From Heteronotia binoei (Eukaryota), in assembly GCF_032191835.1 (NCBI RefSeq), contig NC_083227.1:21266001-21330000 (forward strand): a stretch of DNA of 64,000 nucleotides, given 5' to 3'. Each line of letters opens with the position of its first letter. The first letter of the stretch is position 1. Both the position numbers and the translations under genes were made by a program. The notes beneath the pieces were generated by a model. It saw only the letters and a list, made by a program, of their open reading frames with translations. It searched no databases and was not told the DNA's origin. Positions 4,922-62,091 of the stretch are shown here, one piece after another.

Positions 4922-5147
4922 GGGGAGGGACGGTGGCTCAGTGGTAAAGCATCTGCTTGGGAAGCAGAAGGTCCCAGGTTCAATCCCCGGCATCTCCAAA
5001 AAAGGGTCCAGGCAAATAGGCGTGAAAAACCTCAGCTTGAGACCCTGGAGAGCTGCTGCCAGTCTGAGAAGACAATACTGACTTTGATGGACCGAGGGTC
5101 TGATTCAGTATAAGGCAGCTTCATGTGTTCATTTCATGTGTTCATTT
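4922..5147 (+). mobile_element. Young tRNA-derived SINE (family 1)
   Basis: Almost identical to 4498-4711. Confidence 0.85.
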
Positions 5148-37078: not shown

Positions 37079-38053
37079 TCATCATCACCACCACCATCAT
37101 CATCAGAATTTATAAACTTCCCTTCCCCAAAGGGCTCAGGGCAATGAACATCAGCATAGGGCATGCAAACAGTAAAAATACAATAGATAATAAATAAAAG
37201 CAATAAACGTCTTCCAGATAATCCATGACAAACATAAGATTTCACTCTCTCCATTGGTAGATTGTGGACCAGACTTGGTGAAGGCCATTTTGAGAGTCCA
37301 TTGCTGTAGGCCTGGTGGAACATCTCTGTTCTACATGCCCTGCAGAACTGAACTAGGTCCCGCAGAGCATAGATGTCACTAGGTAGAGAGTTCCACCAGG
37401 CCAAGGCCAGGGCTGAAAATAATACTCTTTAGTATTTACAGATATTCTGAAGTAAATGCAATAATGGCATTCACTGGAAGCTTAAGAAGGGCATTTGTGA
37501 TTTAATCCAGGATCCTGTTTCCCATAGTGATTCCCCTAGGTGCCTCCAGGAAGCAGCCAGCAGGATATCAAAGGGATTATTCCTCCCTTGCTGCTATCTC
37601 CCAACACCTGGTGCTCAAGGGCACCCTGCCTCTGAAACTGGGGGTTCCATTTAGCCACCCTTAGCGATGCAATTTATATGAACTATCTAATTAATTTCTC
37701 TAATGCCATTTTAACCCCCTAAGCAGGTAGCTATTGCTGTATCATGACACACAGAATTTTTAGGTTTCACTCCAATCAACCATATCTCTATAATGGTTTT
37801 CTTTTGTCTCCATTTTTTTCCCTTGGTCCCAGAAAAGTGTAATGTTATCTGGAAGTATCATCTGGTTCCACCATTTGTTGAAGAGCCCTGATGCTTTGAC
37901 AAGATCCCACCAGCCTTGCTGGATTAGCCTTTCATCCTGATGGAGCTTCAGGGGTGCTGTGAGAAAACCAAGGATTACCACAAGGGATGGCGATAAGGGG
38001 CGTGCATTTGTCTGCGCACCACTGAGGGGTGGAACTGCCTCTTGGGGAAGGAA

Positions 38054-38812
38054 ATGGCTGCGACGCAAGAGACGACAATCACTCAGGAGTCGCTAAAGCA
38101 GGGGAATCAGATCAAAACAGAGGAACAGGAGTCAGTTGACTCTGAACCAGAGGAAGAAATGGAAGAAGCTGATGGTCTCACAACAGGGAGGACTGGTGAA
38201 GTTCTGCTGGAGGAATCTCCACAGCTCGTGAAGCAAGAGCCAGAAGAAGAGCCATCCCGAAACTGGGATGCCCAGTTGCAGGAATTCCTGAAGACACTTC
38301 AGGCTCCTCCTTCTATAGGGGATGGCCTACAATTGCCTGAACCAAGGCAATGGAATGACTGTGGAACATCTCCAGTGCCTTCCAAGGGCGTGGCAGAGGC
38401 CACCAAGTGGCCTGGTGGATTGTGGGCTTCCCAACCCCAGCTGATTCCCCTTGGAGAAGTAAAGCAAAACCACGAGGCTGAGTGCTGTGGGAAGGAGAAA
38501 GTCCAAACTGGAGATACTGTTGGGGCGGAGATGTGGCGCCAGCGCTTCAGGAAGCTCTGCTATCGAGAAGCTGAGGGCCCTCGAGAGACTTGCAGGCAGC
38601 TGCAGGAGCTTTGCTGTCAGTGGCTGAGGCCTGAGAGATGCACCAAGGAGCAGATCCTGGATCTCCTGATCCTAGAGCAGTTCTTGGCTGTCCTGCCGCC
38701 AGAGATGCAGTGCTGGCTCAGGGAGAGTGATCCGGAGAACTGCACCCAAGCGGTGACCCTGGCGGAGGATTTCCTTCAGGCGCAGCAAGGTGGCAAGGGA
38801 TGGGAACGGCAG
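38054..38812 (+). CDS. Gene C SCAN-domain exon (coding part)
   Basis: GAAATGGCTGCG start, CAG|GTGAGA donor; probable acceptor at 37832. Confidence 0.9.
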
Positions 38813-41800
38813 GTGAGAACAAGACCACCCCCCCCCCCATTTAAAAAAAAGAGATTGTCCCACATGAAGTGAAGGTCCCTGGGGAAACGAACAAAACTAC
38901 AGTAAAGTGAAGTATAAAGTCAGAACAAAGTTTGAGACGAGTGGCAACTGTAAGACCAACAAAATTTTATTGTTTGTTGGTCTTAAAGGTGCCACTGAAC
39001 TTGGACCTTTTTTTTTGCTGCTTCAGACCAACATGGCTACCCACCAGTTTGGTGTAGTGGTTAAGTGTGCAGACTCTTATCTGGGAGAACCGGCTTTGAT
39101 TCTCCACTCCTCCACTTGCAGCTGCTGGAATAGCCTTGGGTCAGCCATAGCTCTCACAGAGTTGACCTTGAAAGGGCAGCTTCTGTCAGAGCTCTCACAG
39201 GGTGTCTGTTGTGTGTGGGGAGGGGGGGGAGGTAAAGGAGATTGTAAACCACTCGGAGACTCTTTTGGAGTGCAGGACGAGATATAAATCCAATTATTTC
39301 TTCTTCTTCCTCTGATATCCAGCAGTGCACCTCTAGAATATGATATAACTGTGCAGCCCTGGAATGTGACACAGCAATGCCCACCTGAACTGGGATGGTC
39401 TCTTTTCCACAGAAGAGAGGCAAACCCAATCCAGTCTCTGAGACCCTAGGTAGGCCGGCATGACACGAAGTCTGGTTTGGTTAGGCTTGGCAGACATTTT
39501 GGCTGCACTGAAGGGCTAAGAGGCATCCATTTTCTGATCCTGGGAATGAAGACACTCAGGCCCAGAGATGGAAACATTGCGGGCAAAGCAGGAACATTAG
39601 TTCCCACTTACCTCACCTCTTGCATAAGCCTACCATTTTGATTTAAGGAAAATTAATATTCCCCAATAAAAAGCTGGTTTTCTCTCTTCCTCTGTAAAAT
39701 CAGAGCACTCAGTTTGGGGGGTTGTGTAATAGACAATAGCCCTGTCTTGGATAGCCCATGCTAGTGAGAGCTCATCAGACCTTGGCAGCTAAGCAGGGTT
39801 TGACCTGGCTAGAATTTGTATAGCAGTCCACCAAGGGGATCCAGGGTCATTACACGGAAGCAGGCAATGGCGAGCCACTTCCGAATGTCTCTTGCCTCGA
39901 AAACCCTGTGGGGTTGGTGAAATTCATCTGAGACTTGATGGTGCTTTCCACCCCCATCCTGTAATAAGGCTCTAATGCCCATGGTTGTTGGGAAATAATG
40001 CTGGTATAAAATGCCCATACGAAAAACTCCTTGTTAATGCAGTTCCCGCCAAATAAATAACCCACAAGGTGGTTAAAGTTACATGTGAAGCTGTCTTATG
40101 CTGAACCAGGAACCTAAAAGGTTAATATACAACTTAAAGACCCCAAAATTAAAAGCAAAATATAGAATTAAACCATAAGCAAAAATACATCTCTTTATTA
40201 TAGAAAGTTAAAAACATTTAGCGGCCTATCACTAGCCTCCTTATGAACATATATGAAGCTGCCTTATACTGAATCAGACCCTGAGTCCATCAAAGTCGGT
40301 ATTGTCTGCTCAGACTGGCAGCGGCTCTCCAGGGTCTCAAGCTGAGGTTTTTCACACCTCTTTGCCTGGACCCTTTTTAGTTGGAGATGCCAGGGATTGA
40401 ACCTGGGACTTTCTGCTTACCAAGCAGATGCTCTACCACTGAGCCACCATCCCTCCTTTGTAAAATAAAACAACAATGGGAAACCACTTGACCTGACATG
40501 TTTCAACCTAGAATAGTCTTCTTCAGAGGTCAAACAAGCATATACACATACAGGCTCATGATGCATGCTGTACTTTTTATTACTAAGTCAGTAAAGTTAT
40601 TTGGATTGGATTGGCTCATGATACAAAATACAATAAATCAATAAACCAATGATGGACCAAAAAGAAAGTGTTTTAATACAGTGTCAGAGGCTTAAAGATG
40701 TAATTGAGGCCTCTTATAATGCAGCCTTATGTCCTATTCAAGGGTATACGTGTCACATCATGTGTCTTATTGTATGCCTCACCAGAATGGTCCAGAATTA
40801 ATCCAAGTCATTGTCAGATCAGAGCCAGTATGCCAAGAATTGTGTGTATTGAATCAGGTCATTAGTCCATCAAAGTCTGTATTGTCTCCTCTGACCAGCA
40901 GGGACTCTTCAGGAGTTCATGAAGACAGGCCCTGCCCAAAAGAGGTCTTTCCCATCACCTCCTGCCTGGTCCTTTTATTTGGAGACACTGGGGATTGAAA
41001 CCTGAAGCTTTCTGCATGCCAAGCAGAGGCCTTCCCTCTGAGCCACAGCTTCTCCCCAATTTCCAAATCGTTGTGCAGACTGAGATACTTTTTTATTTCC
41101 GTAATTTATGGTCTGCTTTTCTCACTGAACTCAAAGCGAATTACACTGGGCGAGTCAGTACTATCAACAGAATGGGACGTTCAGTAATAATGAAGTAGGA
41201 TCAGAGAAGTCTGGAACTGATCGACCAATAGAATTGAATTTGTACTACTGTGTATTGGAGTTTGCCAGATGTACCCCCCCCCCTTTTATCAAAACAGTTC
41301 TTTGTTGCTTCCTGATTTCATTTTTAATTGCCACCCCTCCCCCTTTCAGATTAAGGGCTCTTCAGAAGACATGTTTGTAAATCTACCCAAGACAAGCAAG
41401 GAATTGCTAGGAGCAGCAAAGAGACAGTGTTTCATGGAAGCCAAGCAGTGCGTTGATGGAAGTGCAAATGTTTCAGGTAAGAGAACATGAGAAGCCATGT
41501 TGGATCAGGCCAATGGCCCATCCAGTCCAACACATCCAGTCAGTATCATGCAGTGGCCAAAACAACAACAAAAAAAACAGGTACCATCAGGAGGTCCACT
41601 AGTGACACCAGACCACTAGAAGTCCTCCCACTGTTGCCCCCCCTCAAGCACCAAGAATACAGAGTATCACTTGCCCCAAACAGAGAGTTCCATCTACGTA
41701 TTGTGGCTAATAGCCACTGGTGGACCTCTGCTCCATATGTTTATCCAATCCCCCGTTGAAGTCATCTGTGCTTGCAGCCGCCGCCACCACCTCTGGAAGT

Positions 41801-44800
41801 TAATTCCATGTGTTAATCACCTTTTGGGCAGGGCCTGTCTTCATGAACTCCTGAAGTTGTTACAGCTCTACCTGTAGTGCTGCTTTGAACTGAATGGGCC
41901 CTTTTCCAGGTCTGTGGACAGTAGTAGCAGTTATATGTTTCTGAAATTGCCCAGAAAGGGATTAACACCTGTCTCTTCTTTGCCTACTGCCTGTCTGGAT
42001 GTTTCTTTTAGTCATTGGCTGACCTGCCATGATGTCATGGATGGCTAGGGATGCTACCAGGAACAGCATATTTCTTTCAAGTACTGTGTCTTTTGCAATG
42101 GAAGCTGCTTCTGCTCTGGCTGTGTATCTATATTAGCAAAGCTTGAAGTTAGTTTTCTGGGGCATACCAGGGCAAAGAGCAACAGAAGCAGAATTACTTA
42201 GTTGTTGAAGGGGAATCTTCCCCTTATCCCTCTCCCTCCCCCTGGCCTGGTGTAGGCAGACGGTTGTAGACAGCCAACAAGGCATGGAGGCCAAGGCCTT
42301 CCCCTGATATTGCCTTCTGGCACTGGGATTCAGAGGCTTAGTGCCCTCATTCACTATGGCTTCTACCCACTGATAGATTTATCTAATCCCCTTTTATAAC
42401 AACTTAATAAAAGCTCTACAGGATCAGACCATTAGCCCATCTACTGCAACATCCCGTCTCCCACAGTGGCCAACTAAGGCCAACAACAAGGCATAGAGGC
42501 CGAGGCCTTCCCTTGATGTTGTCTCCTGGCTCTGGGATTCAGAGGCTTAGTGCCTCTGAATGTGGAGGTTCTCCTCAATCACCACCAGGACTTTTATTGT
42601 AGCAGGAACTCTTTTGCATGTTAGGCCACACCCCTCTTATGTAGCCAATCCTCCAAGAGCTTACAGGGCTCTTAGTACAGGGCCTACTGTAAGTTCTGGG
42701 AGGATTGGCTACATCGTGGAGGTGTGGCCTAATATGCAAAGGAGTTCCTGCTACAAAAAAAGCCCTGGTCACCACTGATAGACTTATCCTACACAAATCT
42801 ATCTGATCCCATTTTAAAAGTTCAGGACAGACAAAAGGAAATACTACATTACACACTGTATCTGAAGAAGTATGTTTGCACATGAAAGCTTATACATTAA
42901 ATAAAACGTCATTGGTCTTAAAGGTGCCACTGGACTCCAACTTTGTTCTGCTTTACACAGAGGATGATTAAAATGTGGAATTCACTGCCAAAGGATGCAG
43001 TGATGGCCACAGGAATAAGCAGCTTTTAAAGGGGATTAGAGAGATTCACGGCGGATAAGTCTTTAAGTGGCTCCTAGCCATGGTGACTGAGGGGAACCTC
43101 CATATTCAGAGGCACTGATCCTCTGAATCCCAGAGCCAGGAGGCAACATGAGAGAAAGGCTTTGGCCTCTATGCCGTGACGTTGACCCTCCAGAGGAACT
43201 GGTTGGCTCCTGTGTGAGACAGGATGCTGGACTAGATGGACCATTCATCTGATCTAGTAGGACTCTTCTTACGTTCAGGATTTGGAGATCTTCTTCGGCC
43301 CTCGCCTCTAAAAGATGCCAGAACTATGCTAAAAGGGGATGTTGACACCCACAGATCATGTTCAGAAAGAATCTTGAACACTGTTTCCCCTTTATCCCCT
43401 TGAACACTGTTTTCCCCTTTATCAAACAATAGGTGGCCCATCAATTAGTCTATTGACCATTGGCGACTGATGGATTTTGGCCAGCATGCAGATTTCATTA
43501 ATCTCAAGTACCATCACCTAAATTTACTTCTGGATTCTCCCCTTTTCCTATTGGCAGATAGGCAGGCCCTATATGGTCTGCCTATCTGCGGGACCACGTT
43601 TCTCCATATGTTCCCCAGAGAACACTGCACTCAGGAACACAAAATCTGTTATTTATGCCCAGACCAAGGGAGGCCAGACTGCTCTGCACGAGCTAGGGCC
43701 TTCTCAGTGGCAGCACCAACAATGTGGAATGCCCTCCCAGAGGCCATAAGGGCCCTGCGGGATCTCTCCCAATTCTGCAGGGCCTGTAAAACTGAATTGT
43801 TTCAACAGGCCTTTAATATCTAACAGAACTGCCACTCTACACAGCTGAGCAACGTCATTTATGAAGTATTATATCCACCACAAGATCACTGTCAGAGGAA
43901 AGAAAGTTATGATCCCACTTATACTGAACTTTGAGTAGAAACATGAAATGTATTTTGTTAATTTTATTGTTTTAAATTGTAATTTTAAATTGTTTTTTGA
44001 TTGATGGTTAGCTGCCCTGAGTCTGCTTGTGGAGAGGGCGGGATAGGAAACTAAAGAAAATTTAAAAAATAAAATTTTCTTCCAGCAGGCAATGGGTGGA
44101 TGAGCGAACCTGAGGAGGAGCTGAAGCCTTTCTTGGAAAACCCTGAGGAAGAGGAACCACCAAAGATGCTGTTGGAAACATCCAGAGAGAATGATTTCTC
44201 ACGTGGTAGAAAAGGGGATGAGAATCCATGCAGGGCAGAGAGTCAGAACGGAAATAACAGAGAGACGGAAGCCGCTGGGCCTGTTTTTCCTGAAGGCACT
44301 GATAAAAGTCTCACTGAAGCCATAGCCCTGCCGCAGGTGAGCAGCATGAAATGTGAGGCGCACAAGGAAAGCTTTGGTCAAAATCCGCTCCTTTTGACTT
44401 CTGAGAGGAGCCAGGCAGGAGAGAAAACTTATACGTGCTGGCATTGTGGCCAAAGCTTTGGTAGCAGCTCAGATCTCGTGTCCCATGAGAGAACCCACGT
44501 GGGGGAGAAACTGTATAAATGTGCCCACTGTGGAGAAAGTGAGAGAACCCACACAGGGCAGAAGCCCCATAAATGCTCACACTGTGGGAATACCTTTGGG
44601 TGGAACTCGCAAGAGGGAATCCATGCTGGCGAGAAGCCTTATACCTGCTCTGAGTGTGGGAAAAGCTGCAGTCAGAGATCAGATCTCCTTAAACACCAGA
44701 GGACTCACACTGGGGAGAAACCTTACAAGTGCACTGTGTGTGGGAAAAACTTCACAAACATCTCAGGTCTCAAAGTCCACCAGAGGATCCACACGGGCGA

Positions 44801-45902
44801 GAAACCGTACAAATGCTCGCACTGCGGGAAATGTTTCAGTTGGAGCTCACACTTCATGTCGCATGAGAGAATCCACACGGCGTTGTGCTCGTACTGTGGG
44901 AAAAGCTTCAGCCAAAATTCGGACCTCGTTGAGCATGAGCGAACCCACACAGTGAAGGAGTCATTTGCGTGCTTTGCCTGTGGGAAAGCTTTTGATGTCA
45001 GTGCAGAACTGGTTGCGCATGTCCGGACCCACAAAGAGAAGCCTTTTGAGTGCTCGGTCTGTGGGAAGACCTTCCGGAACAGCTTGCAACGAATTGCCCA
45101 CCAGAAAGTCCATACAGGAGAGAAGCAACATAAATGCTCCCACTGTGGGAAAAGTTTTAGCCAGAAGCAGAGCTTGATTATTCATGAAAGGATCCATACA
45201 GGAGAAAAACCATATAAATGCTTAGTCTGTGGGAAAAACTTCAGAAACCTGCCAAATCTTAAATCGCACGAAAGGACCCATACAGGAGAGAAACCATACA
45301 AATGCTCCTACTGTGACAAAAGTTTTCGCTGGAGCTCTCATCTGGTGCTGCATGAGAGAATTCACACAGGAGAGAAGCCCTATAGATGCTCAGACTGTGG
45401 GAGAGCCTTTGACCGGAGGTCAAACCTTCTTGTGCATGTGAGAATCCACACCGGGCAGAAACCTTACAACTGTTCCGACTGTGGGAAAAGCTTCACCTCC
45501 AATTCTGTTCTTCTTCGACATCAGAAAATCCACACAGGAGAGGAACCTTGTACGTGCTCTCAATGCGGGAGAATCTTCTGGCAGCGGTCAGACCAGACTG
45601 ACCAAGCTGGAGAGAAGGGCTCGAAATGTTCGGAGTGCTTGAGAAGCCGCTACCTGAGTTCTGACCTGGTGGTACGGGCGAGAAACTGTGTGGGGGAAAA
45701 GCTGTTTGAATGCTCGATCTGTGGGAAGAGTTTTCGGAATAGCTCCCACCTCCTCAACCACCAGAGCGTCCATACAGGTGTTCAGCCATATCAATGCTCA
45801 GACTGTGGGCGGAACTTTGTGAGAAGGCCCAATCTGTTAGCTCCTGTGAGCAACCCTGCAGGGCAGAAACCGTACAAGTGCTTGGATTGTGAGAAGAGCT
45901 AG
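38054..45902 (+). CDS. Gene C: SCAN + degenerate KRAB-A + C2H2 zinc-finger protein (~900 aa); coding exons 38054-38812, 41350-41476, 44086-45902
   Basis: 759+127+1817=2703 nt in a continuous frame with GT-AG introns; [59 protein letters not shown]; ~13 intact C2H2 fingers. Confidence 0.88.
39045..39307 (+). mobile_element. Family 2 SINE
   Basis: Full unit homologous to the others. Confidence 0.75.
39740..39945 (+). mobile_element. 5S rRNA-derived SINE
   Basis: CTCATCAGACCTTGGCAGCTAAGCAGGGTTTGACCTGG 5S-like head plus GCAGGCAATGGC...CTTGCCTCGAAAACCC tail. Confidence 0.6.
40243..40456 (-). mobile_element. Young tRNA-derived SINE (family 1)
   Basis: Reverse complement of the 4498 unit. Confidence 0.85.
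41350..41476 (+). CDS. Gene C 127-nt phase 0-1 exon, degenerate KRAB-A
   Basis: CCCTTTCAG|...|GTAAGA; [43 protein letters not shown] aligns without gaps to the KRAB-A consensus; canonical KRAB-A exon length and phase. Confidence 0.8.
42586..42767. mobile_element. Palindromic MITE (hairpin family) inside a CR1 fragment
   Basis: Near-TSD ATCACCAC/GTCACCAC. Confidence 0.8.
43560..44060 (+). mobile_element. L2 LINE 3' fragment
   Basis: [43 protein letters not shown]; tail GCCCTGAGTCTGC...AGGGCGGGATAG. Confidence 0.8.
44086..45902 (+). CDS. Gene C zinc-finger exon (~19 finger positions, ~13 intact)
   Basis: TTTTCTTCCAG|CAG NAGNAG acceptor; 600-aa ORF of TGEKPY-linked C2H2 fingers. Confidence 0.93.
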
Positions 45903-50193: not shown

Positions 50194-53047
50194 ACTCTGT
50201 TATGTATCATGCTTTGGATATGTTTTCTGATTTTGTACTCCAAGGTTTTCTTCTTTCAGTGTTAGTACGTATTAAACAGTTTTCATTGTGTTGGCTTCTC
50301 ATTCTGTAATTTGCCTTGAGTCTCAATGAGAGGACAGCGTATAAGTGAAGTAAGAAATGGTTCCAGACAATTTTTAAAAATGTTATTTACTGTGCCTTTC
50401 CAGGTAGGAAGACTTGTGCCTGTAAGAGTGAAAACAAAGGCAGATGTTCAACAGGTGCAGCTCCTCCACACCCTTTGTTCATATCTATGAAACATACCCT
50501 CTGATTCTTTTACATCTGAATGTAGGACTGACAACAACTTTTTTTCCCAGGCAGGGTTCATGTGCACAGTAACCAGAAGTTCGACTGGTAAAGTTTCTCC
50601 CCTCACGGAAGCTCTACTGCTGCTAAGGAGCACTGCTAGGAGGAAAGCTGGCAGCCCTATTAAGAGGCCCTATCACCCAGAATTAGATGTAACTATATCC
50701 TCAGGTGAACAAAAGGCATTCTATTCATGCTCAGATACACTCTTGCTGCTTTTAAATGTTTCATTTTTTCTAGCAACCCTACAAGCAGCTTGATGGTGCC
50801 TTTTCACAGGAAAAACAACACAGGTGGGAGTGTTTAAAATCTCCTTACTCCTACTGATCCCTCTCTAAGTCCACTATTTCAGAAACTGCAAACTGTAGGG
50901 GGGGTAGGTGGGTTGAGGAAAGACACCAGTTAATATGCTGAAAATTTGGTGCCTCTATCTCAAATAAACAGCTCCCCCAGAGCCCCAAATACCCATGGAT
51001 CGATTCTGATAACCCAGCCTCCAACTGGGGATTGGCAACCCCATGAGATCTTGAAAAACCCACCAATCAGAATTTTGGATGGGCGTGCTGGGCGATTATA
51101 TATGAGAACCAGCTTGCTGTAGAAGAGCAGTGAACTCTATTTTGGAGAACTGGGTGTGAATCTCCACGCCTCCATATGCAGCCAGCTGGGTGATTTTGAG
51201 TCACACGGTTCTCTCAGAGCTCTCTCAGCCCCACCTACCTCACAGGGTGGTTGTTGTGGGGAAAGGAAGGGAAGGTGATTGTAAGCTGCTCTGAGACTCC
51301 TTCAGGTAGTTAAGAGCAGGGTATAAAAACCAACTCTTCTTTTTCTAAAGCCCAAGGCACTACCAGTGTGATGAATGACCAGTGTTTTCAGAGCACTAAT
51401 TGTAACTGATATTTTTAATACCCAATTTTTCTTGTTTTTAAAACAAGGCTTTTATTTTTGAATGGACATTCTCATGTCAGAAAATAAAAGGGTGTTGTTT
51501 TTTTTAATTGCACTTGGGTACGGCAATGCAACTCACAGGTCACTTCCTGGCTGTGGATCTGATTCAAGCACACTGCCTGTCAGTGGAAGCAATGCACATT
51601 CTGCTGAGAACAGTGTGAACCACTCAGTCACCAAGTTGCGAGATATCCAGAGCTCTGGAATATGCAGAGATTAAAAGATTCAGCTGAGATTGTGAGGGAG
51701 CACAGGAGAAGTCGCCATTTTAAGGCAGTGTTCTTCAAACGCCTAACAGCTTTCATGCTGTTTTTCATGAAATTCAAATAATAGAAAGTATTATAAAGAG
51801 CAATAGGAAGTATTACAAAGAGCAGAACTTTGCTCAGAACTAGAAACATCACACAAGGCTTCCTTCTGAGCCAGACCCTCCTTCCATCAGGCCGGCACTA
51901 GCCCTCCAGGATCTCCAGCTGAGGCCTTTCACCTCATGTGATCCTTTTTTACGGAATACGCCAGACCCTGGAACCAAGGACAATTTGCACAAAAACAAAC
52001 ATTACAAAAGTGAATCTCAGGATAGTGAGCAGAGACATCCAGTTTAGTTTCAAGAAACATGTTCTCTCAAGTCAAATGGTTCAAAAATGGTTTATTTTTA
52101 AAATTAGGAAATGACTATGTGCTTTGTTCCTCAAAGGCCTTTCTTTAACCTGCACCCTTCTACAGACAGGATCCAATGAGCACTAACCATAGAGTTGCCA
52201 ACTGACTTAGCACTAGCCAGGCCTGTCCCTTAAAAAACCCTTTGTCTGGAAGCTAGGCCATGAGGGCCCAATCACCATGACAACAAAAGGAAATTCTACT
52301 TTACAGAGAGCGTGATTAAAATGTGGTATTCGCTGCCAGAAGATGTAGTGATGGCCACAGCAATAAATGGCTTTAAAAGAGAATTAGATAGATTTATGAA
52401 GGATAAGTCTATCAATGGCTACTAGCTGTGGTGGCTGAGGGGAACATCTACATTCAGAGGCACTAATCCCAGAACCAGAAGGGAACCTCAGGGGAAGGTC
52501 TCGGCTTCTGTACTCTGCTATTGGCTGCCCAGAGGAACTGGTTGGCCATTGTCTGAGATGGGATGCTGGATCAGATGGACCATTGGTCTGATCCGACTTA
52601 GCCACACATATCAGGGGAGAATGATGGCTGTGTGGCTAAGTGGAAGAGAATCTACTTGGCATGCAGGTCCCAGGTTCCATCCCTGGTACCTCCAGTTGAA
52701 AGCTTAAATTAGTAGGTGTTACAAAAGACCTCTGCCAGAGACCCTGGAGAGCCAGTGCCAGCCTAAATGGACAAAACTGACTTCTAGGGGCCAAAGTCTG
52801 ATTCAGTATAAGGCAGCTTCATGTGTTCATGTGTAGGGCACCCAAGCTCTTTGCAGAAGGGCAGTATAAAAAGATGATAGATTGGGTAGAAAAGACGAGT
52901 TGAGGAGTGGTAAAATTTACCTCACACCATGGCTGGCAACCTCCCCCGCCTCCTCCTTCCCCACAAGCATGAACAGTAGATCAGCATTAACCCAAAAGTG
53001 TACATTTAAAAAAGAGGCCTTCTTGGTTCAGTGAAAACCCACCATAA

Positions 53048-53749
53048 TCAAGAATCATCCATGAAGTAGTTTGCCAGGGCCTCTCGCACCAAGTTCCCGT
53101 CCTGTGTGTCCTGGGCAGATGTGGGGAACTTCAAGTGCCCCTCAGGAGGTTGGTCCCACACTCCATCTTGTGCCCACGGCCCATCGAGCAAGGCATGCCC
53201 ACGGTTCTCACAGATATTGTGCAGCACGACCGAGCCTACCACCACAGGGATGATGTTTTCCTCCGCGACCTCCAAACGGGTGGCCAGGCACCTCCACCGC
53301 CCCTTCAGCCGCCCAAAGGCATGTTCAGTCACCTTCTTGCAGTCGTTCAGGCGGGAATTGAACCGCTCTTCATGAGGATTGAGGTCGCCTGTGAAAGGTC
53401 TCATGAGCCACTTCTTCAGAGGGTAGGAATCATCACCCAAGATCAGAGGTGGAATCTCCACATCACCAAGGGTCATTGTAGGGTTCCCAGGGACGAATGA
53501 CCCCTGGTCCATTGCCTCGCAGAGAGCCAAGTTTCGAAAGAAGGAGCCGTCCTTATCTTTTCCGCACCAGCTGAGCTCAATGTCAATGAAACGGCCCCTG
53601 TGGTCCACTGTCCCTTGCATCGACATGGGGAAAAAACCCTTCTGGCTGACATTGGTTCCCTTTCGAACAGTGCAGATGATGGGGATGTGGGTCCTGTCTA
53701 TGACCCCCACACAGTTGGGAAACCCCATTTCTGCAAAGCCCTCCATAAC
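53048..53749 (-). CDS. Harbinger-derived gene, DDE catalytic-domain exon
   Basis: 233 codons plus stop; D207, D256, D295, E331. Confidence 0.9.
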   Translation of the reverse strand, partial: VMEGFAEMGFPNCVGVIDRTHIPIICTVRKGTNVSQKGFFPMSMQGTVDHRGRFIDIELSWCGKDKDGSFFRNLALCEAMDQGSFVPGNPTMTLGDVEIPPLILGDDSYPLKKWLMRPFTGDLNPHEERFNSRLNDCKKVTEHAFGRLKGRWRCLATRLEVAEENIIPVVVGSVVLHNICENRGHALLDGPWAQDGVWDQPPEGHLKFPTSAQDTQDGNLVREALANYFMDDS

Positions 53750-56700
53750 CTTCAAAATGAAAAGATTGAGAAATTAAGACATTTTCTAACGGTCCCTCTA
53801 TTTTCTTAGTGCTGTAGTCTTTGAGCTTTTCATTTTGGACTTACATTTAACCCTCACATGGGGACTAAACTATTTTTTTTAAATCCTTTTGGTTTTAATC
53901 TGCTGCTGCTTTGAGATGCAGGGGTTTTAATTTATATACGGTATTATGTGCTGTGTTCCCTCTAAACTGTTAGCATGAACTAGCTCACAGATTTTAAGCC
54001 TCCAGCTCACACATTTTTGTCTTAGCTCAGGAAAAATGGCCCCAGAGCACACTAATTTATGCAGTAGCTCCCTTCATGCCAATAGCTTACAACTTTAATG
54101 CCAGTAGCTCACAAAGTAGAATTTTTGCTCACAAGACTGTGCAGCTTAGAGGGAACATTGATTATGTGCTATCCTTTTATACATACTCTCGTAGAATCAT
54201 AGAGTTGGGTCTTCTAGGGTCACCTAGTCCAACCCTCTGTACAATGCAAGAGCTTTAGAAGTACCTCCCCCCACACCTACAGTGACCCCTGCTCCAAGCC
54301 CAGAAGATGACAAAAAAAAAAAAACCCCACCAAACCTCTCCAGGATCCCTGGCAAAACTAGCCTAGAGAAAAATTGCTGCCTGACAAAGTGGCAAACACT
54401 TCTTTCCCTGGGCGTGTAAGAAGCAGCCATGAGAACTAAGCACTGATGCAACCCTTCCTGCCTTCACTGTCATGACCTGCCTGAGTTCACGTAATCAGCA
54501 TTGCTGTCAGATGGCCATCCAACCTCTGTTTAAAAACCTCCAAAGAAGGAGAGACCACCACCTCCTGAGGAAGCCTGTTCCACTGAGGAACTGCTCTAAC
54601 AGTCAGGAAGTTCTTCATAATGTTAAGCCATAAACTCTTTTGATTTAATTTCAACCCATTGGTTCTGGTCCAACCTTCTGGGGTAACAGAAAAACTCTGC
54701 ACCATTGTCTATATGACAGCCCTTCAAGTACTTGAAGATGGTGATCATATCACCTCTCAGTTGTCTCATCTCCAGGCTAAACATACTCAGCTTCTTCAGC
54801 CTTTCCTCAAAGGACTTGGTCTCTCATGTTCATAATATTTTAGTCTGCTGCTTTTTGTCATTTCTTTGCCCTGAACTGGATAGCTTAGGCTAGCCCATTT
54901 TTTGTCAGCTAAGTCATGTTGGCCCTGCTTAATACCTGAATAATCGATCACCAAGGAAGTCCAGAGCTGCATCGCTGAGGCAGGCAAACCCCATCTCAAG
55001 AGATGAAAGCAGTGGTTTGCCATTGCCTGCCCACGTCTCTCACCTGAATACCTTGTCACTGTAAGTCACCTGGGACTTGGCAGCACTTTACACACACAAG
55101 GTTAGCATTCTGTCATTTGCTGCTGTCATTTGACAGTATGTGTATTAGAGTGTCAAGACTTAGGATCTGAGAGACCCAAGTTCAAATCCCCATGAAAACT
55201 TGCTGTGTGACTGTGGGCCAGTCAAATCATTCTCTCTCAGCCTAACTTGCCTCAGAGGGTTGTTATGAGGGTAAAATAAGGGAGAGGAGAACAAGGTAAG
55301 CCCCTTTGGGTCCTTACTGGGGAGAAAGGCCGGGGTACAAATGAAGTAAATTAAACAGTATATGTATATCTGAGTCACCTTATGTTTTGTGTCATGCTTT
55401 ATTGGTTTTTAAAAAAAATCCACTTGTGGATTCTCAAAGAGAAAAGTGGGAAATGAATTTCTTTTAAAAAATTATTGCATTGTGGGATGGAATTGCCATT
55501 TGGCCTATAGGGAGAGATCCCAGTAGGCCACTGACTTGGAAGGCCACTGACAGCCAGGAGCAAGCAGCACCAAGCCCTAATAGCTCTGCCCATGCTCAGG
55601 AACCACCCAGACTTCACCAACTGTGCCAATGGTGGGTGCTGTCTCAACTACAACCTCCTCTTTGGGGATGCAGTGGATGAGCTGATACTTATTGCTGGCA
55701 GGGTCTAAACTGAGTGGCCCCTGCAGCCCTTAGCTTGTAGCGCTGTCATTGGGGCCAGTCTCCCTGATTCACTCCTTTGTGTCATCATTTGGCAGTAGTA
55801 ATACAATACAGCTCTTCCCAGCCTATAAAGTTCTTTGACAATGTTTTTATTTGTGGAGCCCAGATAGAAAAGCGGGAAATTCACTTCCTATATCCAGGGT
55901 TCCTAAACTTTTTGAGCCTGAGGACACCTTTGCAATACTGACACAGTGTGGTGGGGGCAGTCACAAAATGGCTACCACAGGATGCAGAGTAATTGACAAA
56001 TTGGCTGCTGCAGCTTACCTTCAGTCACACTCTGAAGACCCTGGTGCTGTGGTGGCAGCTGCCACCAAAGCAACATTAAAAAAAAAACCCTGCAATCCCA
56101 GTCTCATCAGATCTCAGAAGCTAACAGGGTCGACCTTGACAAGAACTTGGATGGGAGACCTCCTTGGAATACCAGCAGTCGGGACGAGAGAGGCAGTCTT
56201 TATTCAGCCACCTCTCCAGATACCCTCCTGAAGTTACCAGAAGTTGCCATGACTTCCAGGTGCAGAGGTTGCCGAGGCTTTTTTGTAGCACAAGCTCTTT
56301 TGCATATTAGGCCACACACACCCCGATGTAGTCAATCTTGCTGGAGCTTACAGTAGGCACTGTACTACGAGCCCTGTAAGCTCTTGGAGGATTGGCTAAA
56401 TCAGGGAGGTGTAGCCTAATAGGAGAGCCAGTTTGGTGTAGTGGTTAAGTGTGCGGACTCTTATCTGGGAGAACCGGGTTTGATTCCCCACTCCTCAACT
56501 TGCACGTGCTGGCATGGCCTTGGGTCAGCCATAGCTCTGGCAGAGGTTGTCCTTGAAAGGGCAGCTGCTGTGAGAGCCCTCTCCAGCCCCGCCCACCTCA
56601 CAGGGTGTGTGTTGTGGGGGAGGAAGGTAAAGGAGATTGTGAGCTGCTCTGAGACTCTCCGGAGTGGAGGGCGGGATATAAATCCAATATCTTCTTCTTC

Positions 56701-58021
56701 TTCTAATATGCAAATGAGTTCCTGCTACAGCCAGCAGCAAGCAGAACCAAGCCCGGGTAGCTCTGCCCATGCTTGGGTCCAGAGGAGAGCGATGAAGATG
56801 GTGGTGAGGGGTCTAGAGACCAAGTCCTATGAAGGAAGGTTGAGGGAGCTGGGTATGTTTAGCCTGGAGAGGCAGCAGCTGAGAGGTGATATCATCACCA
56901 TTTTCAAGTACTTGAAGGACTGTCATATAGAGGATAGTGCAGAATTGTTTTCTGTGACCCCGGAAAATAGGACCAGAACCAATGGCTTGAAATTAAATCA
57001 AAAGAGTTTCCATCTCAACACTGTGAAGAACTTCCTGACCGTCAAAGTGGTTCCTCAGTGGAACAGGCTTCCCCAGGAGGTGGTGGGCTCTCCTTCTTTG
57101 GAGGTTTTTGAGCAGAGGCTAGATGGCCATCTGACAGCAATGAGGATCCTGTGATTTTTAGGGGGAGGTGTTTGTGAATTCCCTGCATTGTGCAGGGGGT
57201 TGGATTAGATGACCCTGGAGGTCCCTTCCAACTCTATGATTCTGACTTCCAGGTGCCTTCCTAGACAAAAGACCCACCTAGCCATACCCACTTTCTAAAA
57301 ACACTTCATGGGTGCCAGTAAAGGTGTCGCCAAACACCATGGTGCCAACGAGCACCACGTTGGGGACCTCCCCTGCTCTAAATTTAAAAAAAAATGTATT
57401 ATTAACATCAGCACAAAATGCTGGAGCCCATCCTCCTGACGCAAAAGGGCGTACCTCTTTGGGGTCTTGGAGAGCCACCACGTCCTTGAAGAGCAGCTTC
57501 TCAATGGCCAGGCAGACCTCGATGAAGACCTCCCCGACGGTGGAGCGCCCGACGCCGAAGTGGGCGGCCACGGAGCGGTAGCACTCGGTGGTGGCCAGCT
57601 TCCAGAGGGCGATGCCCACCCGCTTCTCCACGCTGAGCGGGGCCCTCATGGTGGTGGTCTGGCGCTGGAGCTCGGGGCGCAGCTTGTCGCAGAGCTCCAG
57701 GAAGGTGGCCTTGGTCATGCGGAAGCCCTGGAGCCACTGGCGGGGCTCCCACGTCTCCAGCACCACCCGTTCCCACCAGTCCTGGCTGATCTGGCGCGAC
57801 CAGAAGCGGTGGGGCCCGGCGCTGAGCTCTTCCACCAGCAGCCGGGTCTCGTTGTCCGGGCAGAGGTCGGGGAGGAGCTGGTGCAGCAGGGCCAAGTGGT
57901 TGGCCATCACCCGCCGCATGGTGCGCCGGGCCCGGGAGGCGACGGCGGTGCGGTGCAAGTGCAGGCGCACCAGGTTGTGGGTGGCCAGGATCACCAAGAT
58001 GATGGCTTCGAGGTTCTCCAT
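53048..58021 (-). CDS. Spliced PIF/Harbinger transposase-derived gene (DDE_Tnp_4, HARBI1/ALP1-like family), 422 aa; coding exons 58021-57455 and 53749-53048; probably domesticated
   Basis: 567+702 nt, phase-0 intron GAG|GTACGC...TTTTCATTTTGAAG|GTT. The junction LQDPKE-VMEGFAEMGFPNCVGVIDRTHIPI restores the Harbinger consensus. Motifs FWSRQISQDWW, FRMTKATFLELC, LSVEKRVGIALWKLAT, FGVGRSTV, LGDDSYPL, EHAFGRLKGRWRCL, VLHNICE. No stops or frameshifts. Confidence 0.9.
53951..54160. mobile_element. hAT MITE (CAGTGTTCCCTCTAAG family) in the transposase intron
   Basis: 8-bp TSD ATTATGTG at 53943-53950 and 54161-54168. Confidence 0.9.
54190..54810 (-). mobile_element. CR1 LINE 3' fragment in the transposase intron
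   Basis: WTRTNGLKLNQKSLWLNIMKNFLTVRAVPQWNRLPQEVV...LEVFKQRLD. Confidence 0.8.
56093..56176 (+). mobile_element. 5S rRNA-derived SINE head
   Basis: CCCAGTCTCATCAGATCTCAGAAGCTAACAGGGTCG...CTTGGATGGGAGACC...GGAATACC. Confidence 0.6.
56275..56730. mobile_element. Hairpin MITE interrupted by a family 2 SINE (56425-56703)
   Basis: MITE arm resumes CTAATATGCAAATGAGTTCCTGCTACA after the SINE; duplicated CTAATA. Confidence 0.75.
56790..57245 (+). mobile_element. CR1 LINE 3' fragment
   Basis: GLETKSYEGRLRELGMFSLE...QWNRLPQEVVGSPSLEVFEQRLD; CCAACTCTATGATTCT end. Confidence 0.85.
57455..58021 (-). CDS. Harbinger-derived gene, N-terminal/HTH exon (CpG island)
   Basis: 189 codons, strongly GC3- and CpG-rich; upstream acceptor TTTTTAG at 58057. 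Confidence 0.88.
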
Positions 58022-58233
58022 GACGCACGGAGGCGCACGGCAGCGTCGAGGTCTTCCTAAAAACTGGGGAGGGGGTTCTCTTTCAGAGACACGCCGGCTT
58101 GTTGATTTCTGACCGCCACTTCCCCTCTCCCCCCCCCCCAAAAGTCTCAGATCAGCGCCATAAATGAGTATTTTTTCGACACCAAAAATCGGTGGCCAAT
58201 ATTCATGCCTCCGTTCACTGTACCGGATCTCCT

Positions 58234-58272
58234 CGTCTGATGAAGTGTGCTTAGAGCGCACGAAAGCTTACA
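58234..58272 (+). ncRNA. Minimal hammerhead ribozyme motif (Penelope terminal repeat)
   Basis: GT-CTGATGA-A-GTGTGCT-TAG-AGCGCAC-GAAAGCTT-AC: canonical CUGAUGA/GAAA core with 7-bp stem II. Confidence 0.65.
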
Positions 58273-58339
58273 TTCTGGATAAAACTTGGTTGGTCTTAAA
58301 GGTGCCGCTTGACTCCCACCTTGTTCTATAAACCTGCCG

Positions 58340-58740
58340 TGATTGACGGCTAAGGGCAGGCAAACCGGGAACGCCGCACGCACCGAATTCTGCAACGAAT
58401 GCAAATCTAAGCCTTCGCAGGAGGGAATCCGGCAAAAGGATTCCCAAATCCCAATCCCGCCCTATTTTCTCTTTTTAAAAAATGCCGCTTGCAGTTCCTT
58501 TCAAAAGAAAGAGAAGAACCGCGTCGCAAAGAAGTTGCCGAGCCGTTTTCCTTCCCTCGCCTCTCTTCCTGCCAAGCTCTCTGGGCGTCTTTTTTCCGTA
58601 TCGTTGCCTTGCCTCGACTCACTGCAGTTAGAGAGCTTGAAGGGTTAACGCCATAGAGTGCTCGTTTCCTAGGAGGGTTCAAAAACATTGCAAGGGAGGG
58701 AGGGCCGGCTGATTTGGTAAGGTGGAGTGACGTCATTGTG
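58340..58740 (-). promoter_or_regulatory. Promoter and non-coding first exon of the Harbinger-derived gene
   Basis: CpG-rich; perfect CRE palindrome TGACGTCA at 58728-58735; minus-strand donor GCA|GTGAGT at 58623. Confidence 0.55.
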
Positions 58741-59261
58741 TGACCCCCCCAGCCTCTCTGTGGGGGGGGGAGGCAATAGTGAATTTTTAATTTGCTCTGA
58801 CAGCTGCCGAAATTCACAAAGCTGATCAATTTCATTGCATTTATACCAAGTAACTTTTTTTTTTTGCATTATCCTCCCCACCCCCAGCCAGGTTTAAGAC
58901 TCCAACTCTATTACCAGCTAAGCTGGAAAGGCTACTCCAGCTGAATCTGCAATGCTTTCATTAACGGAATAGTGAACGCTTTAATTAATGGAATAGATTC
59001 AGGTGGGTAGCCATGTTGATCGTAAACAACAGAACAAAGTTTCGAGTGTACAGGGGCACGTTTAAGCCCATCAAAGTTTTATTCTGGGTATAAGCTAAGT
59101 ACATACTCTTTCTTCAGATACAGTGTCGGAAGAAGCATGCCTGCAGACAAAAGCTTATACCCAAAATAAAACCGTTGGTCTTAAAGGCGCCACTGCACTC
59201 AAACTTTGCTCTGTTAATTTATAGAACTTTCTGCAGTAGGATAGGATGATGTATCTGACTC

Positions 59262-59505
59262 TGGGGTGACATTGCATCACGTTTTCATAGCAGACTTTTT
59301 TACAGGGTGGTTTGCCATTGCCTTCCCCAGTCATCTACACTTCCCCCCCAGCAAGCTGGGGACTCATTTTACTGACCAGGAAGGATGGAAGGCTGAGCCA
59401 GGAAGCTACCTGAACCCAGCTTCCGCTGGGATCAAACTCAGGTCGTGAGCAGAGAGCTTAGACTGCAGTACTGCAGCTTTACCACTCTGCGCCATGGGGC
59501 TGCTT
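59262..59505 (-). mobile_element. Sauria-type SINE
   Basis: Reverse complement of the 12285 unit. Confidence 0.75.
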
Positions 59506-59901
59506 ATAAAATGATGACGACTACCAGCTTAGGATAATTCGAATCTTACGACACTGCCACAAGGCAGGCCAAATGCTAGGGAATTGGAGATAGGCTGTGA
59601 GAAATGCTTTGTGAAATTCTTTGCAGATAAGGTCTCGTCGCTCCGCCACAACCTTCCCGCCACATTGGATACAATATGTGAACTCCAGGCCTCGTGCCTG
59701 TCTTCTAGACCAGTTTTGGATTGCTTCAACATGCTCAGCATTGAGGAAGTTGACACAATCCTCTCCACTGTACGCCCTACGATTTGTGATCTGGACCTGT
59801 GCCCCTCCTGGCTAATTAAAGCTTGCCAGAGGGAGCTTAGATGTCCTGTACGGGACATCGTAAATAGATCCCTCTTGGAAGGGCTTTTCCAATGCCTCTT
59901 A

Positions 59902-60491
59902 CTTATTTATTTATTTTATTCCACTTATATCCCGCCCTCCCCGCCGAGGCGGGCTCAGGGCGGCTCACACAGACATCCATGTGCATGATTCAACATAATA
60001 ATACAGCATTAAAATCATAAAACATAGAGTAAAATAGACATAAAACACAATGTTTTGGTACTATGATCTCACATTTTCCAATTTTATAGTTCTCTGTATA
60101 GCCGATCTTAAATTATCCTCTCTGCAACTGCTATACAGCAGATTGCTGGTGGTGGTTCACATGTTGCTATAAACTGCAGTGGCCAGCAACCTAGTTCACA
60201 AATGCCTGGTGGAAGAGTGCCATCTTACAAGCCCTGCGGAACTGTATGAGCTCTCGCAGGGCCTTTACCTCTTCCGGCAACTGATTCCACCAGCTTGGGG
60301 GCCACTACAGAGAAGGCTCTGGCTCTAGTTGACATGAGCCTGGCCTCCTTAGGGCCGGGGATTGTAAGTAGATTTTGTGATCCAGACCGAAGTGCTCTCC
60401 GGGGAACATGTGGGGAAAGGCGGTCCCTCAGGTATGCAGGCCCCTGGCCATATAGGGCCTTAAAGGTAAGAACCAACACCTTGAAACGAAC
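59902..60491 (-). mobile_element. L2 3' fragment nested antisense within L2
   Basis: TFKALYGQGPAYLRDRLSPHVPRRALRSG...RARAFSVVAP; flanked by CCTCTTA at 59895-59901 and 60492-60498. Confidence 0.85.
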
Positions 60492-61880
60492 CCTCTTAAA
60501 GAGGCCATGGTCCGCCCTCTCTTGAAAAAAGCTACATCAGATCCGACTGAATTGGCAAATTATCGACCAGTCTCAAACTTACCCTTTTTGGGCAAAATTA
60601 TTGAGAGGGCAGTAGTGTTACAGCTACAGAGTTTTCTGGATGACGCTTCCATTTTAGACCCCCACCAGTCTGGCTTTCGCCCAGGACATGGGACGGAGAC
60701 ACTGCTGGTCGCCCTGGTGGATGACCTCCAGTAGCATCTGGATCGAGGTGGCTCAGCAGTGCTGATGTTGTTAGATCTATTGGCTGCGTTCAACACAGTC
60801 AACCATCAGCTACTGATGCACCGCCTCGCCGGCGTGGGGATCCAGGGGTTGGCCTTGCAATGGCTTTCCTCATTGCTTGATGGTCGGGGACAAAGGGTGA
60901 CGATTGGAGGTGAACTGTCTCGGAGGCACCCACTTAATTGTGGGGTGCCACAGGGGGCGGTGCTCACCCCGATGTTATTTAACATCTATATGTGTCCCCT
61001 TGCCCAGATTGCCCAGATTGCTGATGACACCCAACTCTATCTACTGATGGCTGGGTGGCCTGTGTCCCAGAAAATCTGGACCTGGCATTGCAAGCTGTGG
61101 CAGCATGGCTCAGACTGAGTAGGTTGAAGTTGAATCCAGCGAAGACAGAGGTCCTTTGCCTGAGTCAGGGCGGTCTGGAAATCCCCCTACCAGCATTTGA
61201 TGGTGCGCCATTGAAAATGGCGCGCAGGGTCAAGAGCTTGGGGGTGCTGCTGGAGCCTGCCCTGGCAATGGAGGCCCAGATAGCAGCCACTGCTAAATCT
61301 GCCTTTTTTCATCTTAGGCGGGCGAGGCAGTTGATCCCCTTCCTGGAGCACAGCAACCTGGCAACAATGATCCATGCAACAGTCACCTCGAGGTTGGACT
61401 ACTGTAATGCCCTCTACATGGGGCTGCCCCTGTGCCGAACCCGGAAACTACAGCTAGTGCAGAACTCAGCAGCCAGGTTGTTATTCGGGCTCCCTAGGTG
61501 GAAGAACATACAGCTGGGGCTGCGGGAACTGCACTGGCTGCCAACAGTGTACCGGATTCATTACAAGGTGCTGGTTATTACTTTTAAAGCCCTATATGGC
61601 CAAGGACCTGCCTACCTTAGGGACCGTCTCTCCCCATATGAGCCCCAGAGGGTACTACAATCTGGTTCTCAAAACCTATTGGTAATCCCTGGGTCGAAGG
61701 AGACCAAACTGAAAGTCACCAGAGAAAGGGCCTTCTCGGTTACAGCTCCCCACTGGTGGAACCAGTTACCAGAAGAGGTGTGGGCCTTGTGAAACCTTGC
61801 CCAGTTCTGCAGGGCCTGCAAGACTACCAAAATGAACTTAGATGGTTTTAATGTATATGGTTTTAAATGTATGATTTATA

Positions 61881-62091
61881 ATATGAACATATGTAGCTGC
61901 CTTATACTGAATCAGACCCTCGGTCCATCAAAGTCAGTATTGTCTACTCAGACTGGCAGTGGCTCTCCAGGGTCTCAAGCTGAGGTTTTTCACACCTATT
62001 TGCCTGGACCCTTTTTTGGAGATGCCGGGGATTGAACCTGGGACCTTCTGCTTCCCAAGCAGATGCTCTACCACTGAGCCACCGTCCCTCC
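61881..62091 (-). mobile_element. Young tRNA-derived SINE (family 1)
   Basis: Near-identical reverse complement of 4498-4711. Confidence 0.85.

Follow-up and report, generated by a model that had tools for sequence, protein, structure and literature searches.

A probable host gene derived from a PIF/Harbinger transposase and shared among squamates, in the genome of the gecko Heteronotia binoei

Background

When a vertebrate genome holds an intact transposase reading frame, is this a mobile element, or a gene that the host has retained? The question is raised by a locus of the gecko Heteronotia binoei, which lies in a 64-kb stretch of DNA without N (64,000 nucleotides; RefSeq assembly GCF_032191835.1, contig NC_083227.1, positions 21,266,001 to 21,330,000), hereafter the window, and which consists of a two-exon coding region for a PIF/Harbinger transposase on the minus strand. 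All coordinates given below are positions in the window. An earlier note, made from the sequence alone, had read this locus as an intact, spliced gene other than HARBI1, domesticated independently in squamates and probably undescribed. We find that the locus very probably holds the H. binoei copy of a host gene that occurs across squamates, goes back to a PIF/Harbinger transposase and no longer moves; that it is a domesticated host gene we hold with slightly greater confidence still.

Results

The start codon of the gene lies at 58021-58019 and opens a run of 189 codons (567 nt) extending down to 57455, followed by a GT donor at 57454-57453, where the sequence after the exon reads GTACGC. The intron closes with an AG at 53751-53750, the acceptor sequence TTTTGAAG ending at 53750, and the second exon (53749-53048) adds 233 codons and a TGA at 53050-53048. 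Joined in phase 0 across this GT..AG intron, the two exons yield 1269 nt encoding 422 aa with no internal stops. The junction, 57455/53749, is exactly that given in the earlier note, and all 422 aa of the spliced product agree with a RefSeq prediction from the same species (100% identity; XP_060095036.1, LOC132572210, “uncharacterized protein”). The N-terminal motifs by which the note had characterised the protein, FWxRxxSxDWW and FRMxKATF, are both present in exon 1, and its description of this exon as a coding CpG island is likewise borne out: exon 1 has 68% GC, a CpG observed/expected ratio of 0.68 and a GC content at third codon positions (GC3) of 0.96, the GC3 of exon 2 being 0.67. Long open reading frames (ORFs) also overlap exon 1 in other frames or on the opposite strand (57467-58060, 57501-58028, 57588-58112), but we dismissed them as consequences of the 70% GC. 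High exon 1 GC3 is also seen in Zootoca (0.97), Paroedura (0.96) and Gekko (0.94), with Sceloporus and Eublepharis reaching only 0.72-0.75. Synonymous divergence is moreover lower in exon 1 than in exon 2 in most species pairs, including every gecko-iguanian pair. Biased gene conversion, or an overlapping constraint on the CpG island, could account for both the extreme GC3 and the low synonymous divergence.

An exhaustive HMMER search with exon 2 as query returned 9306 relatives, headed by a 423-aa Anolis protein aligned from its residue 190. A follow-up search with this best Anolis protein recovered a tight set of squamate proteins of 422-423 aa, after which identity falls sharply to 50% or less, and cluster look-ups extended the group to 18 species. 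Orthologues more than 75% identical occur exclusively in squamates. They are present, one to a species, in at least 18 species, are 422-427 aa long and 78-92% identical, and those of 422 aa align without gaps. The group covers Gekkota (Heteronotia, Gekko, Paroedura, Eublepharis, Euleptes, Sphaerodactylus), Cordylidae (Hemicordylus), Amphisbaenia (Rhineura), Lacertidae (Lacerta, Zootoca and three Podarcis species), Anguimorpha (Elgaria, Varanus) and pleurodont Iguania (Sceloporus and two Anolis species). Podarcis muralis has two orthologue records: XP_028576233.1 is full length, and in XP_028576340.1 (P0160, 244 aa) the frame is lost beyond residue ~215 and a premature stop follows, which may reflect either an error in the gene model or a different isoform.

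Orthology is matched by genomic position, which we compared at the loci of eight further species, or nine with the window. The gene's neighbours are SCAN-C2H2 zinc-finger genes in Gekko, Anolis, Paroedura, Sceloporus, Sphaerodactylus, Zootoca and Eublepharis, as they are in the window. The placement of the gene in a ZSCAN cluster, as noted earlier for this DNA, is thus upheld, the surrounding genes being SCAN-C2H2 zinc-finger genes, and the synteny comparison that the note had called for finds the gene among SCAN zinc-finger (SCAN-ZNF) genes in all nine species. Collinearity between the window and the Gekko locus extends over approximately 15 kb and takes in parts of the intron, and the zinc-finger exon at 44100-45902 is 87% identical to the gene downstream of the Sphaerodactylus orthologue. 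Furthermore, the intron falls after nucleotide 567 (codon 189) in phase 0 in all nine genomes, at lengths between 1035 and 3705 nt; in each genome this is the sole GT..AG solution that reproduces the annotated protein.

The coding sequence is under strong purifying selection, such selection having been supposed in the earlier note. Ratios of nonsynonymous to synonymous divergence (dN/dS) calculated by the Nei-Gojobori method (NG86) lie between 0.064 and 0.170 in all 28 pairs of eight species, with bootstrap upper limits of at most 0.26, and 251 of 428 alignment columns are invariant across the 18 species. The note had argued for such selection from an ORF kept intact while its intron filled with insertions, which points in the right direction, but is a weaker argument than the comparative data.

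These results bear directly on whether the locus could be an active, or recently active, autonomous Harbinger transposon. Its ORF and DDE triad are intact in the window, as such an element would require. However, no inverted-repeat pair bracketing the gene, and hence no terminal inverted repeats (TIRs) with a 3-bp TAA/TTA duplication, was found in a search of 51000-60500, where the only inverted pairs are the intronic CR1 copies and short pairs at chance level; the absence of visible TIRs and target-site duplications reported previously therefore stands. Moreover, there is no second copy of the gene within the window, a single Heteronotia protein falls in the gene's 90% cluster, and the ORF lists of the window contain no Myb/SANT-like second ORF. 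Added to the orthology of the locus and its intron across nine species, a span of roughly 200 million years (Myr; age from PMC12262214), and to a dN/dS of about 0.1, these observations effectively refute the idea of an active transposon.

In domain content the protein is a DDE transposase. Pfam DDE_Tnp_4 (PF13359) matches exon 2 over model positions 2-158 of 158 (E=1.3e-20; 5.1e-20 for the whole protein). The catalytic codons are D207 (53698-53696), D295 (53434-53432) and E331 (53326-53324), and the corresponding columns among 185 relatives hold D in 161, D in 158 and E in 157. Both aspartates are kept in 18/18 orthologues, and E331 in 15/18, being replaced by G in Gekko japonicus and Sphaerodactylus townsendi (a GAA to GGA codon change in both geckos) and by K in Rhineura. 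Since Paroedura and Euleptes, which are close relatives, keep the glutamate, the changes in Gekko and Sphaerodactylus are independent. In the Gekko lineage, the one in which relaxation following E331 replacement was examined, the branch dN/dS estimated from pairwise values is approximately 0.2, compared to 0.15-0.16 for its neighbours, with no obvious relaxation.

Conservation is not evenly spread along the protein. Residues 71-189 are its most conserved part, with 76% of positions invariant among the 18 orthologues versus 54% in the DDE core. Most of the core residues that are conserved in the family are kept in the orthologues, and four replacements fixed in the clade (P216T, S230P, G249S, S263L) fall at sites at least 90% conserved in the family. 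The AlphaFold model (mean pLDDT, the predicted local distance difference test score, of 82.9) has confident helices over residues 82-196 and an alpha/beta core over residues 202-372. Foldseek comparison of this model with PDB yields weak best matches (E 2e-3 or worse), nearly all to DDE transposases or integrases, which are consistent with a DDE fold without being diagnostic of it, and a PDB sequence search with exon 2 gave nothing relevant.

Transcription is suggested by two contigs from two sequencing runs of another squamate (L006 and L007; 2048 and 1946 nt), each carrying an uninterrupted ORF and aligning to the window in two blocks that abut exactly at 57455|53749. Given that the intron is at least 1 kb long in every genome examined, we take these contigs to be spliced RNA, and less likely a retrocopy. 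The two contigs part ways 22 nt upstream of the ATG, at an acceptor, where one reads TTTGTATTTGTAG|GATTTC, and this divergence fits the presence of an upstream non-coding exon. Pyrimidine tracts followed by AG, similar to that of the window, occur 20-40 nt upstream of the ATG in other squamates. Further upstream, a block of 230-390 nt shares 71-77% identity with matching blocks of Gekko, Paroedura and Sphaerodactylus. It includes a sequence resembling a cAMP response element (CRE), TGACGTCA at 58735-58728, which is invariant among four geckos, and candidate donors for a 5' exon, either GT at 58622-58621 or GC at 58607-58606. Consequently, the non-coding first exon and CRE promoter proposed in the earlier note are plausible. 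Gekko and Paroedura have a donor-like GAG|GTAAC in this block, at the place where the window shows the GC of 58607-58606, and the window in turn has a consensus GTGAGT (58622-58617), 15 nt upstream of the GC site, that lacks a counterpart in Gekko and Paroedura; judging from the aligned sequences, the donor may have shifted between them.

Table 1 Coordinates of the gene, the repeats in its intron and the neighbouring SCAN/zinc-finger exons in the window
Feature	Position	Strand	Remarks
Upstream block: likely promoter and non-coding exon 1	58380..58770	-	Conserved in four geckos
Probable 5' untranslated region (UTR) portion of first coding exon	58022..58056	-	Acceptor-like AG at 58058-58057; by comparison with other squamates
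Coding exon 1, codons 1-189	57455..58021	-	N-terminal helices; helix-turn-helix (HTH)-like region with FWSRQISQDWW and FRMTKATF
Intron, phase 0, GT..AG, 3705 nt, repeat-laden	53750..57454	-	
Coding exon 2, codons 190-422 and TGA	53048..53749	-	Carries DDE_Tnp_4
Conserved start of 3' UTR	52897..53047	-	Alignments with Gekko (88.6%), Paroedura and Sphaerodactylus extend ~150-190 nt beyond the stop
CR1 3'-end fragment	54487..54824		In intron; inverted partner of 56815-57154
CR1 3'-end fragment, second	56815..57154		In intron; inverted relative to the first
Palindromic unit resembling a miniature inverted-repeat transposable element (MITE), ~140 nt	56279..56421		In intron; 7 related copies elsewhere in window
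Unit resembling a short interspersed element (SINE), ~280 nt	56424..56712		In intron; 11 copies in window
SCAN/zinc-finger exon	8736-9608	-	
SCAN/zinc-finger exon	14011-14883	-	
SCAN/zinc-finger exon	24003-24974	-	
SCAN/zinc-finger exon	27214-28329	-	
SCAN/zinc-finger exon	38042-38872	+	
SCAN/zinc-finger exon	44100-45902	+	

The intron (Table 1) had been described as holding at least eight later insertions, among them 5S- and tRNA-derived SINEs. Its CR1 pieces, MITE-like unit and SINE-like unit are indeed there, and at least seven of its segments have further copies elsewhere in the window. In contrast, the 5S-like match at 56075-56180 is weak (22.8 bits, the gathering score being 38) and, like every other Rfam match to the gene region, sub-threshold, the bacterial-type ones among these being noise. 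Similarly, a degraded tRNA-SINE copy adjoins the gene on its 3' side (52632-52833), whereas none could be confirmed inside the intron. Parts of the intron are collinear with that of Gekko, and the two CR1 pieces were not found in the Gekko intron. Elsewhere in the window, five tRNA-like sequences (4502-4574, 4926-4998, 21984-22056, 40382-40454, 62017-62089; three Pro (GGG) and two Thr (GGT)) are not tRNA genes, and form the heads of a single tRNA-derived SINE family, of which approximately 200 nt in each are 74-76% identical to the degraded copy.

The remainder of the window holds SCAN-domain and C2H2 zinc-finger exons belonging to at least three SCAN-ZNF genes. An open reverse-transcriptase ORF of a long interspersed element (633 aa, 28363-30264, plus strand) directly adjoins a SCAN exon, and two more reverse-transcriptase C-terminal fragments lie on the plus strand at 32761-33405 and 61055-61792. 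In the eight further species, SCAN-ZNF genes make up all the calls within 10 kb of the gene except for an 895-aa Sphaerodactylus product, which has no Pfam match, yet aligns to the downstream zinc-finger exon of the window.

Discussion

Whether the gene arose through an independent domestication, as the earlier note had it, is less clear than the domestication itself. We obtained a tree of 64 sequences from a quick IQ-TREE search, in which many forks remain open, branches are long and the outgroup is not clean. The orthologues form a clade with 100% support, set on a long stem (0.54) and with short inner branches in keeping with squamate relationships. A clade of 25 squamate paralogues, several with an N-terminal KRAB domain, is sister to it; crocodilian, second squamate and turtle clades branch outside these two, and fish copies lie further out. 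Two other clades have very short branches (P0195/P0200/P0201/P0215/P0216 and P0204/P0205/P0209), which suggests, as far as branch lengths can, that they are further conserved host genes.

Sauropsids thus have several conserved clades of paralogues, of which this is one, and duplication has to be taken seriously as the alternative: rather than an independent domestication, the gene would be one paralogue of an older sauropsid family of domesticated Harbinger genes that spread by gene duplication, partly in ZNF-rich regions. The branching order just described is compatible with this, as are the very short branches of the other clades, which are expected of conserved host genes, and the frequent placement of paralogues on the chromosome-sized record that also bears the orthologue (P0183 and P0228 with P0156 in Sphaerodactylus, P0219 with P0159 in Paroedura, and P0186, P0187, P0190 and P0210 on the record of P0276 in Eublepharis). 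However, a shared macrochromosome is weak evidence of linkage, the tree has the deficiencies mentioned above, and Eublepharis and turtles have many near-identical copies, which resemble the products of recent transposition. Additionally, residues 25-485 of P0205, from Pogona, are encoded on a single exon, such that the intron after codon 189 is missing from this protein, the one paralogue in which intron absence was examined. We therefore regard duplication as a possible, if somewhat doubtful, origin. What stands of the claim is a domesticated, squamate-only orthologue group; its independence is not secured.

Several paralogues merit mention in their own right. P0205 (Pogona vitticeps, L008:1-19201) has a Myb_DNA-bind_4 gene immediately upstream of it in the same orientation and a histone H2A gene next to it, and carries D in place of E as its third catalytic residue; with its neighbour it looks like a co-domesticated pair of Harbinger transposase and Myb-like protein. 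In nine sauropsid relatives (P0003, P0006, P0168, P0174, P0178, P0183, P0214, P0219, P0228) a KRAB domain (PF01352) is fused before a Harbinger transposase; they come from lizards and snakes as well as from the turtle Emydura and the kiwi Apteryx. Cosby et al. (10.1101/2020.05.07.082677) have catalogued host-transposase fusions of this sort, which in the present case involve PIF/Harbinger, a superfamily that the main text of that study does not mention. Eublepharis macularius possesses at least ten paralogous Harbinger transposase genes (including P0186, P0187, P0189, P0190, P0196, P0198, P0206, P0211 and P0012), some near-identical (branch lengths of 0.007-0.02) and several on the chromosome record of the orthologue, which may reflect either a recently active element or local amplification.

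What the protein does is a separate question. It appears to keep the architecture of a transposase, with an N-terminal, helical, HTH-like part suited to binding DNA or a partner, joined to an RNase-H-like DDE core, and its conserved job would probably be independent of DNA cleavage. The most likely mode of action would be that of a sequence- or partner-directed adaptor, binding chromatin or DNA, possibly together with a Myb/SANT-like partner encoded elsewhere. A partner of this type is likely given that Harbinger transposases require a Myb-like protein for nuclear import and DNA binding, according to the summary of Sinzelle et al. in PMC9392472. By analogy, such an adaptor role would resemble that of HARBI1 with NAIF1, or those of plant ALP1/ALP2 and HDP1. 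Because E331 has been replaced three times and the N-terminal part is more conserved than the core, we tentatively favour a non-catalytic function, while rating it somewhat short of probable.

A potential alternative is that the protein is a working nuclease or recombinase in most squamates, acting for example on DNA in or near the repeat-rich ZNF/TRIM region, in which case the E331 replacements would be sequencing errors or losses confined to single lineages. Both aspartates (D207 and D295) are invariant, the glutamate is kept in the window and most other species, most family-conserved core residues are retained, and it has been suggested that a conserved Harbinger contributes to the volatility of a TRIM locus (PMC12262214). 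Nevertheless, the three independent replacements of E331 occurred with the ORF kept, constraint is maintained in Gekko, conservation is lower across the DDE core than in the N-terminal part, and the search of 51000-60500 revealed no TIR-like substrates nearby. We consider a nuclease role rather unlikely, and prefer, with the reservation expressed above, an adaptor for which catalysis is not needed.

Several observations weigh against the picture of a squamate-wide host gene with a non-catalytic role. First, all three DDE residues are retained in 15/18 species, the window included, which leaves a catalytic role some likelihood. Second, the match of HTH_Tnp_4 to the N-terminal part is sub-threshold (E=0.13), and the label PF26138 (DUF8040) is one precomputed on the orthologues. 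Third, no partner gene was found within 10 kb in any species examined. Fourth, no orthologue was detected in annotated snakes, agamids or a teiid, nor in turtles, crocodilians, birds, mammals or any other non-squamate, although many of these groups have proteomes in the database; absence from the annotated snakes, agamids and teiid may reflect loss or a gap in annotation. Finally, the spliced contigs stem from another squamate rather than from H. binoei, and could in principle derive from a retrocopy.

The description of the gene as probably undescribed was overstated, because RefSeq already contains models of it from at least 17 species, with this very protein and its orthologues predicted under the names ‘uncharacterized’, ‘ALP1-like’ or ‘putative nuclease HARBI1’, and because domesticated Harbinger sequences have been dealt with in a 2011 report on Anolis and in a 2025/2026 preprint. 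Novelty is accordingly limited: the gene is already predicted and the general phenomenon already published. We found no functional study of the gene, and four of its features did not turn up in the literature consulted, namely squamate-wide orthology, the fixed intron position in nine genomes, the loss on several occasions of the third catalytic residue to other amino acids, and the apparent lack of the gene in annotated snakes and agamids. HARBI1 is the only vertebrate gene derived from a Harbinger transposase that we found to have been studied, and its role is also unknown; the present gene provides a second such case, lineage-restricted, well conserved and dating to around the origin of squamates. 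With a clean set of orthologues, natural variants (E331G twice, E331K once) and the apparent gap in snakes and agamids, it offers a tractable system in which to ask why tamed Harbinger transposases are kept. In a wider picture, sauropsids emerge with several conserved genes of Harbinger origin, of which some carry a fused KRAB domain and one forms a pair with a Myb-like gene.

Comparison with known systems

HARBI1 resembles the gecko gene as a stand-alone host gene derived from a PIF/Harbinger DDE transposase, without TIRs, under purifying selection and with no known biological role. It is reported in all jawed vertebrates (PMC9392472), whereas the gecko gene was detected in squamates alone, encodes 422 aa, sits in a SCAN-ZNF cluster, has the conserved intron after codon 189 and has no known partner of the NAIF1 type. 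Older NCBI annotations of the Gekko and Anolis orthologues as ‘putative nuclease HARBI1’ might suggest that the gene is HARBI1 itself or a recent duplicate of it. Newer annotations instead say ‘uncharacterized’ or ‘ALP1-like’, the neighbours of the gecko gene are SCAN-ZNF genes, and the orthologue group is limited to squamates. Moreover, among the 120 best relatives those with a name belong to reptiles, with the exception of one bird and one fish, and no mammalian or amphibian protein is included; ten of the top 150 representatives, eight having a length like that of HARBI1, were looked up by name and proved to be reptile or fish paralogues or entries without a name, none of them HARBI1. Identity with HARBI1 is consequently very improbable, and the gene is probably distinct from it, set apart by taxonomic range, neighbours and current naming as opposed to direct alignment.

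Within squamates, a comparison is offered by the five divergent Harbinger ORFs without TIRs that Novick et al. 2011 (PMC3014272) described from Anolis carolinensis as probable domestications. These belong to the same superfamily, likewise come from a squamate, lack TIRs and target-site duplications, and were read as domesticated. Yet they are uninterrupted and 442-466 aa long, whereas an intron interrupts the Anolis orthologue (LOC103278110, 423 aa), for which reason a search for open frames such as theirs may have passed over the gene.

Boys, Quinlan and Elde (PMC12262214 / 10.1101/2025.06.23.661133) report from 13 squamates a conserved, transcribed Harbinger as the anchor of the antiviral locus harbiTRIM, and if the gecko gene were this endogenized and transcriptionally active element it would already have been described. 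Both are conserved across squamates and, probably in the case of the gecko gene, transcribed; both have an estimated age of ~200 Myr, about that of squamates, and both occur in the leopard gecko, the common lizard and iguanians. In favour of identity also counts the layout of the mammalian extended major histocompatibility complex, in which SCAN-ZNF, TRIM and butyrophilin clusters adjoin. Nonetheless, the harbiTRIM Harbinger lies near TRIM, butyrophilin and PRY-SPRY genes, whereas PRY, SPRY and RING motifs are absent throughout the 64-kb window, and SCAN-ZNF genes are the only neighbours within 10 kb on either side in the nine species, the eight further ones including Zootoca and Eublepharis, whose orthologues are LOC118081312 and LOC129329411, respectively. 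Squamates have at least two further conserved clades of Harbinger paralogues, and the text of the preprint gives no gene identifiers. We therefore judge it unlikely that the two are the same. A more elaborate scenario, which we put forward as speculative and improbable, is that the gene represents a squamate-specific tamed transposase with dispensable catalysis, whose intron was gained after the split from its paralogues, and which is functionally tied to a fast-evolving SCAN-ZNF/TRIM immune neighbourhood, either as a DNA-targeting adaptor for silencing by SCAN or KRAB zinc-finger proteins or as the conserved Harbinger that drives rearrangement of the harbiTRIM cluster.

Beyond vertebrates, plant ALP1/ALP2 and HDP1 are domesticated Harbinger transposases found in PRC2 (Polycomb repressive complex 2) and histone acetyltransferase complexes (PMC4671723, PMC7282668, PMC5339849). 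They are likewise tamed transposases, acting as components of chromatin complexes and not as enzymes, and several orthologues of the gecko gene are named ‘ALP1-like’. The plant genes nevertheless arose in an independent lineage, the ‘ALP1-like’ name is a best-hit label rather than a statement of orthology, and the DDE triad of the gecko gene is mostly kept. The Drosophila DPLG genes and insect PIF pairs (PMC9710019) offer a parallel for the recurrence of PIF/Harbinger domestication, sometimes with a Myb-like partner; no Myb-like gene adjoins the gecko gene, in contrast to those pairs, whereas its paralogue P0205 in Pogona does adjoin one.

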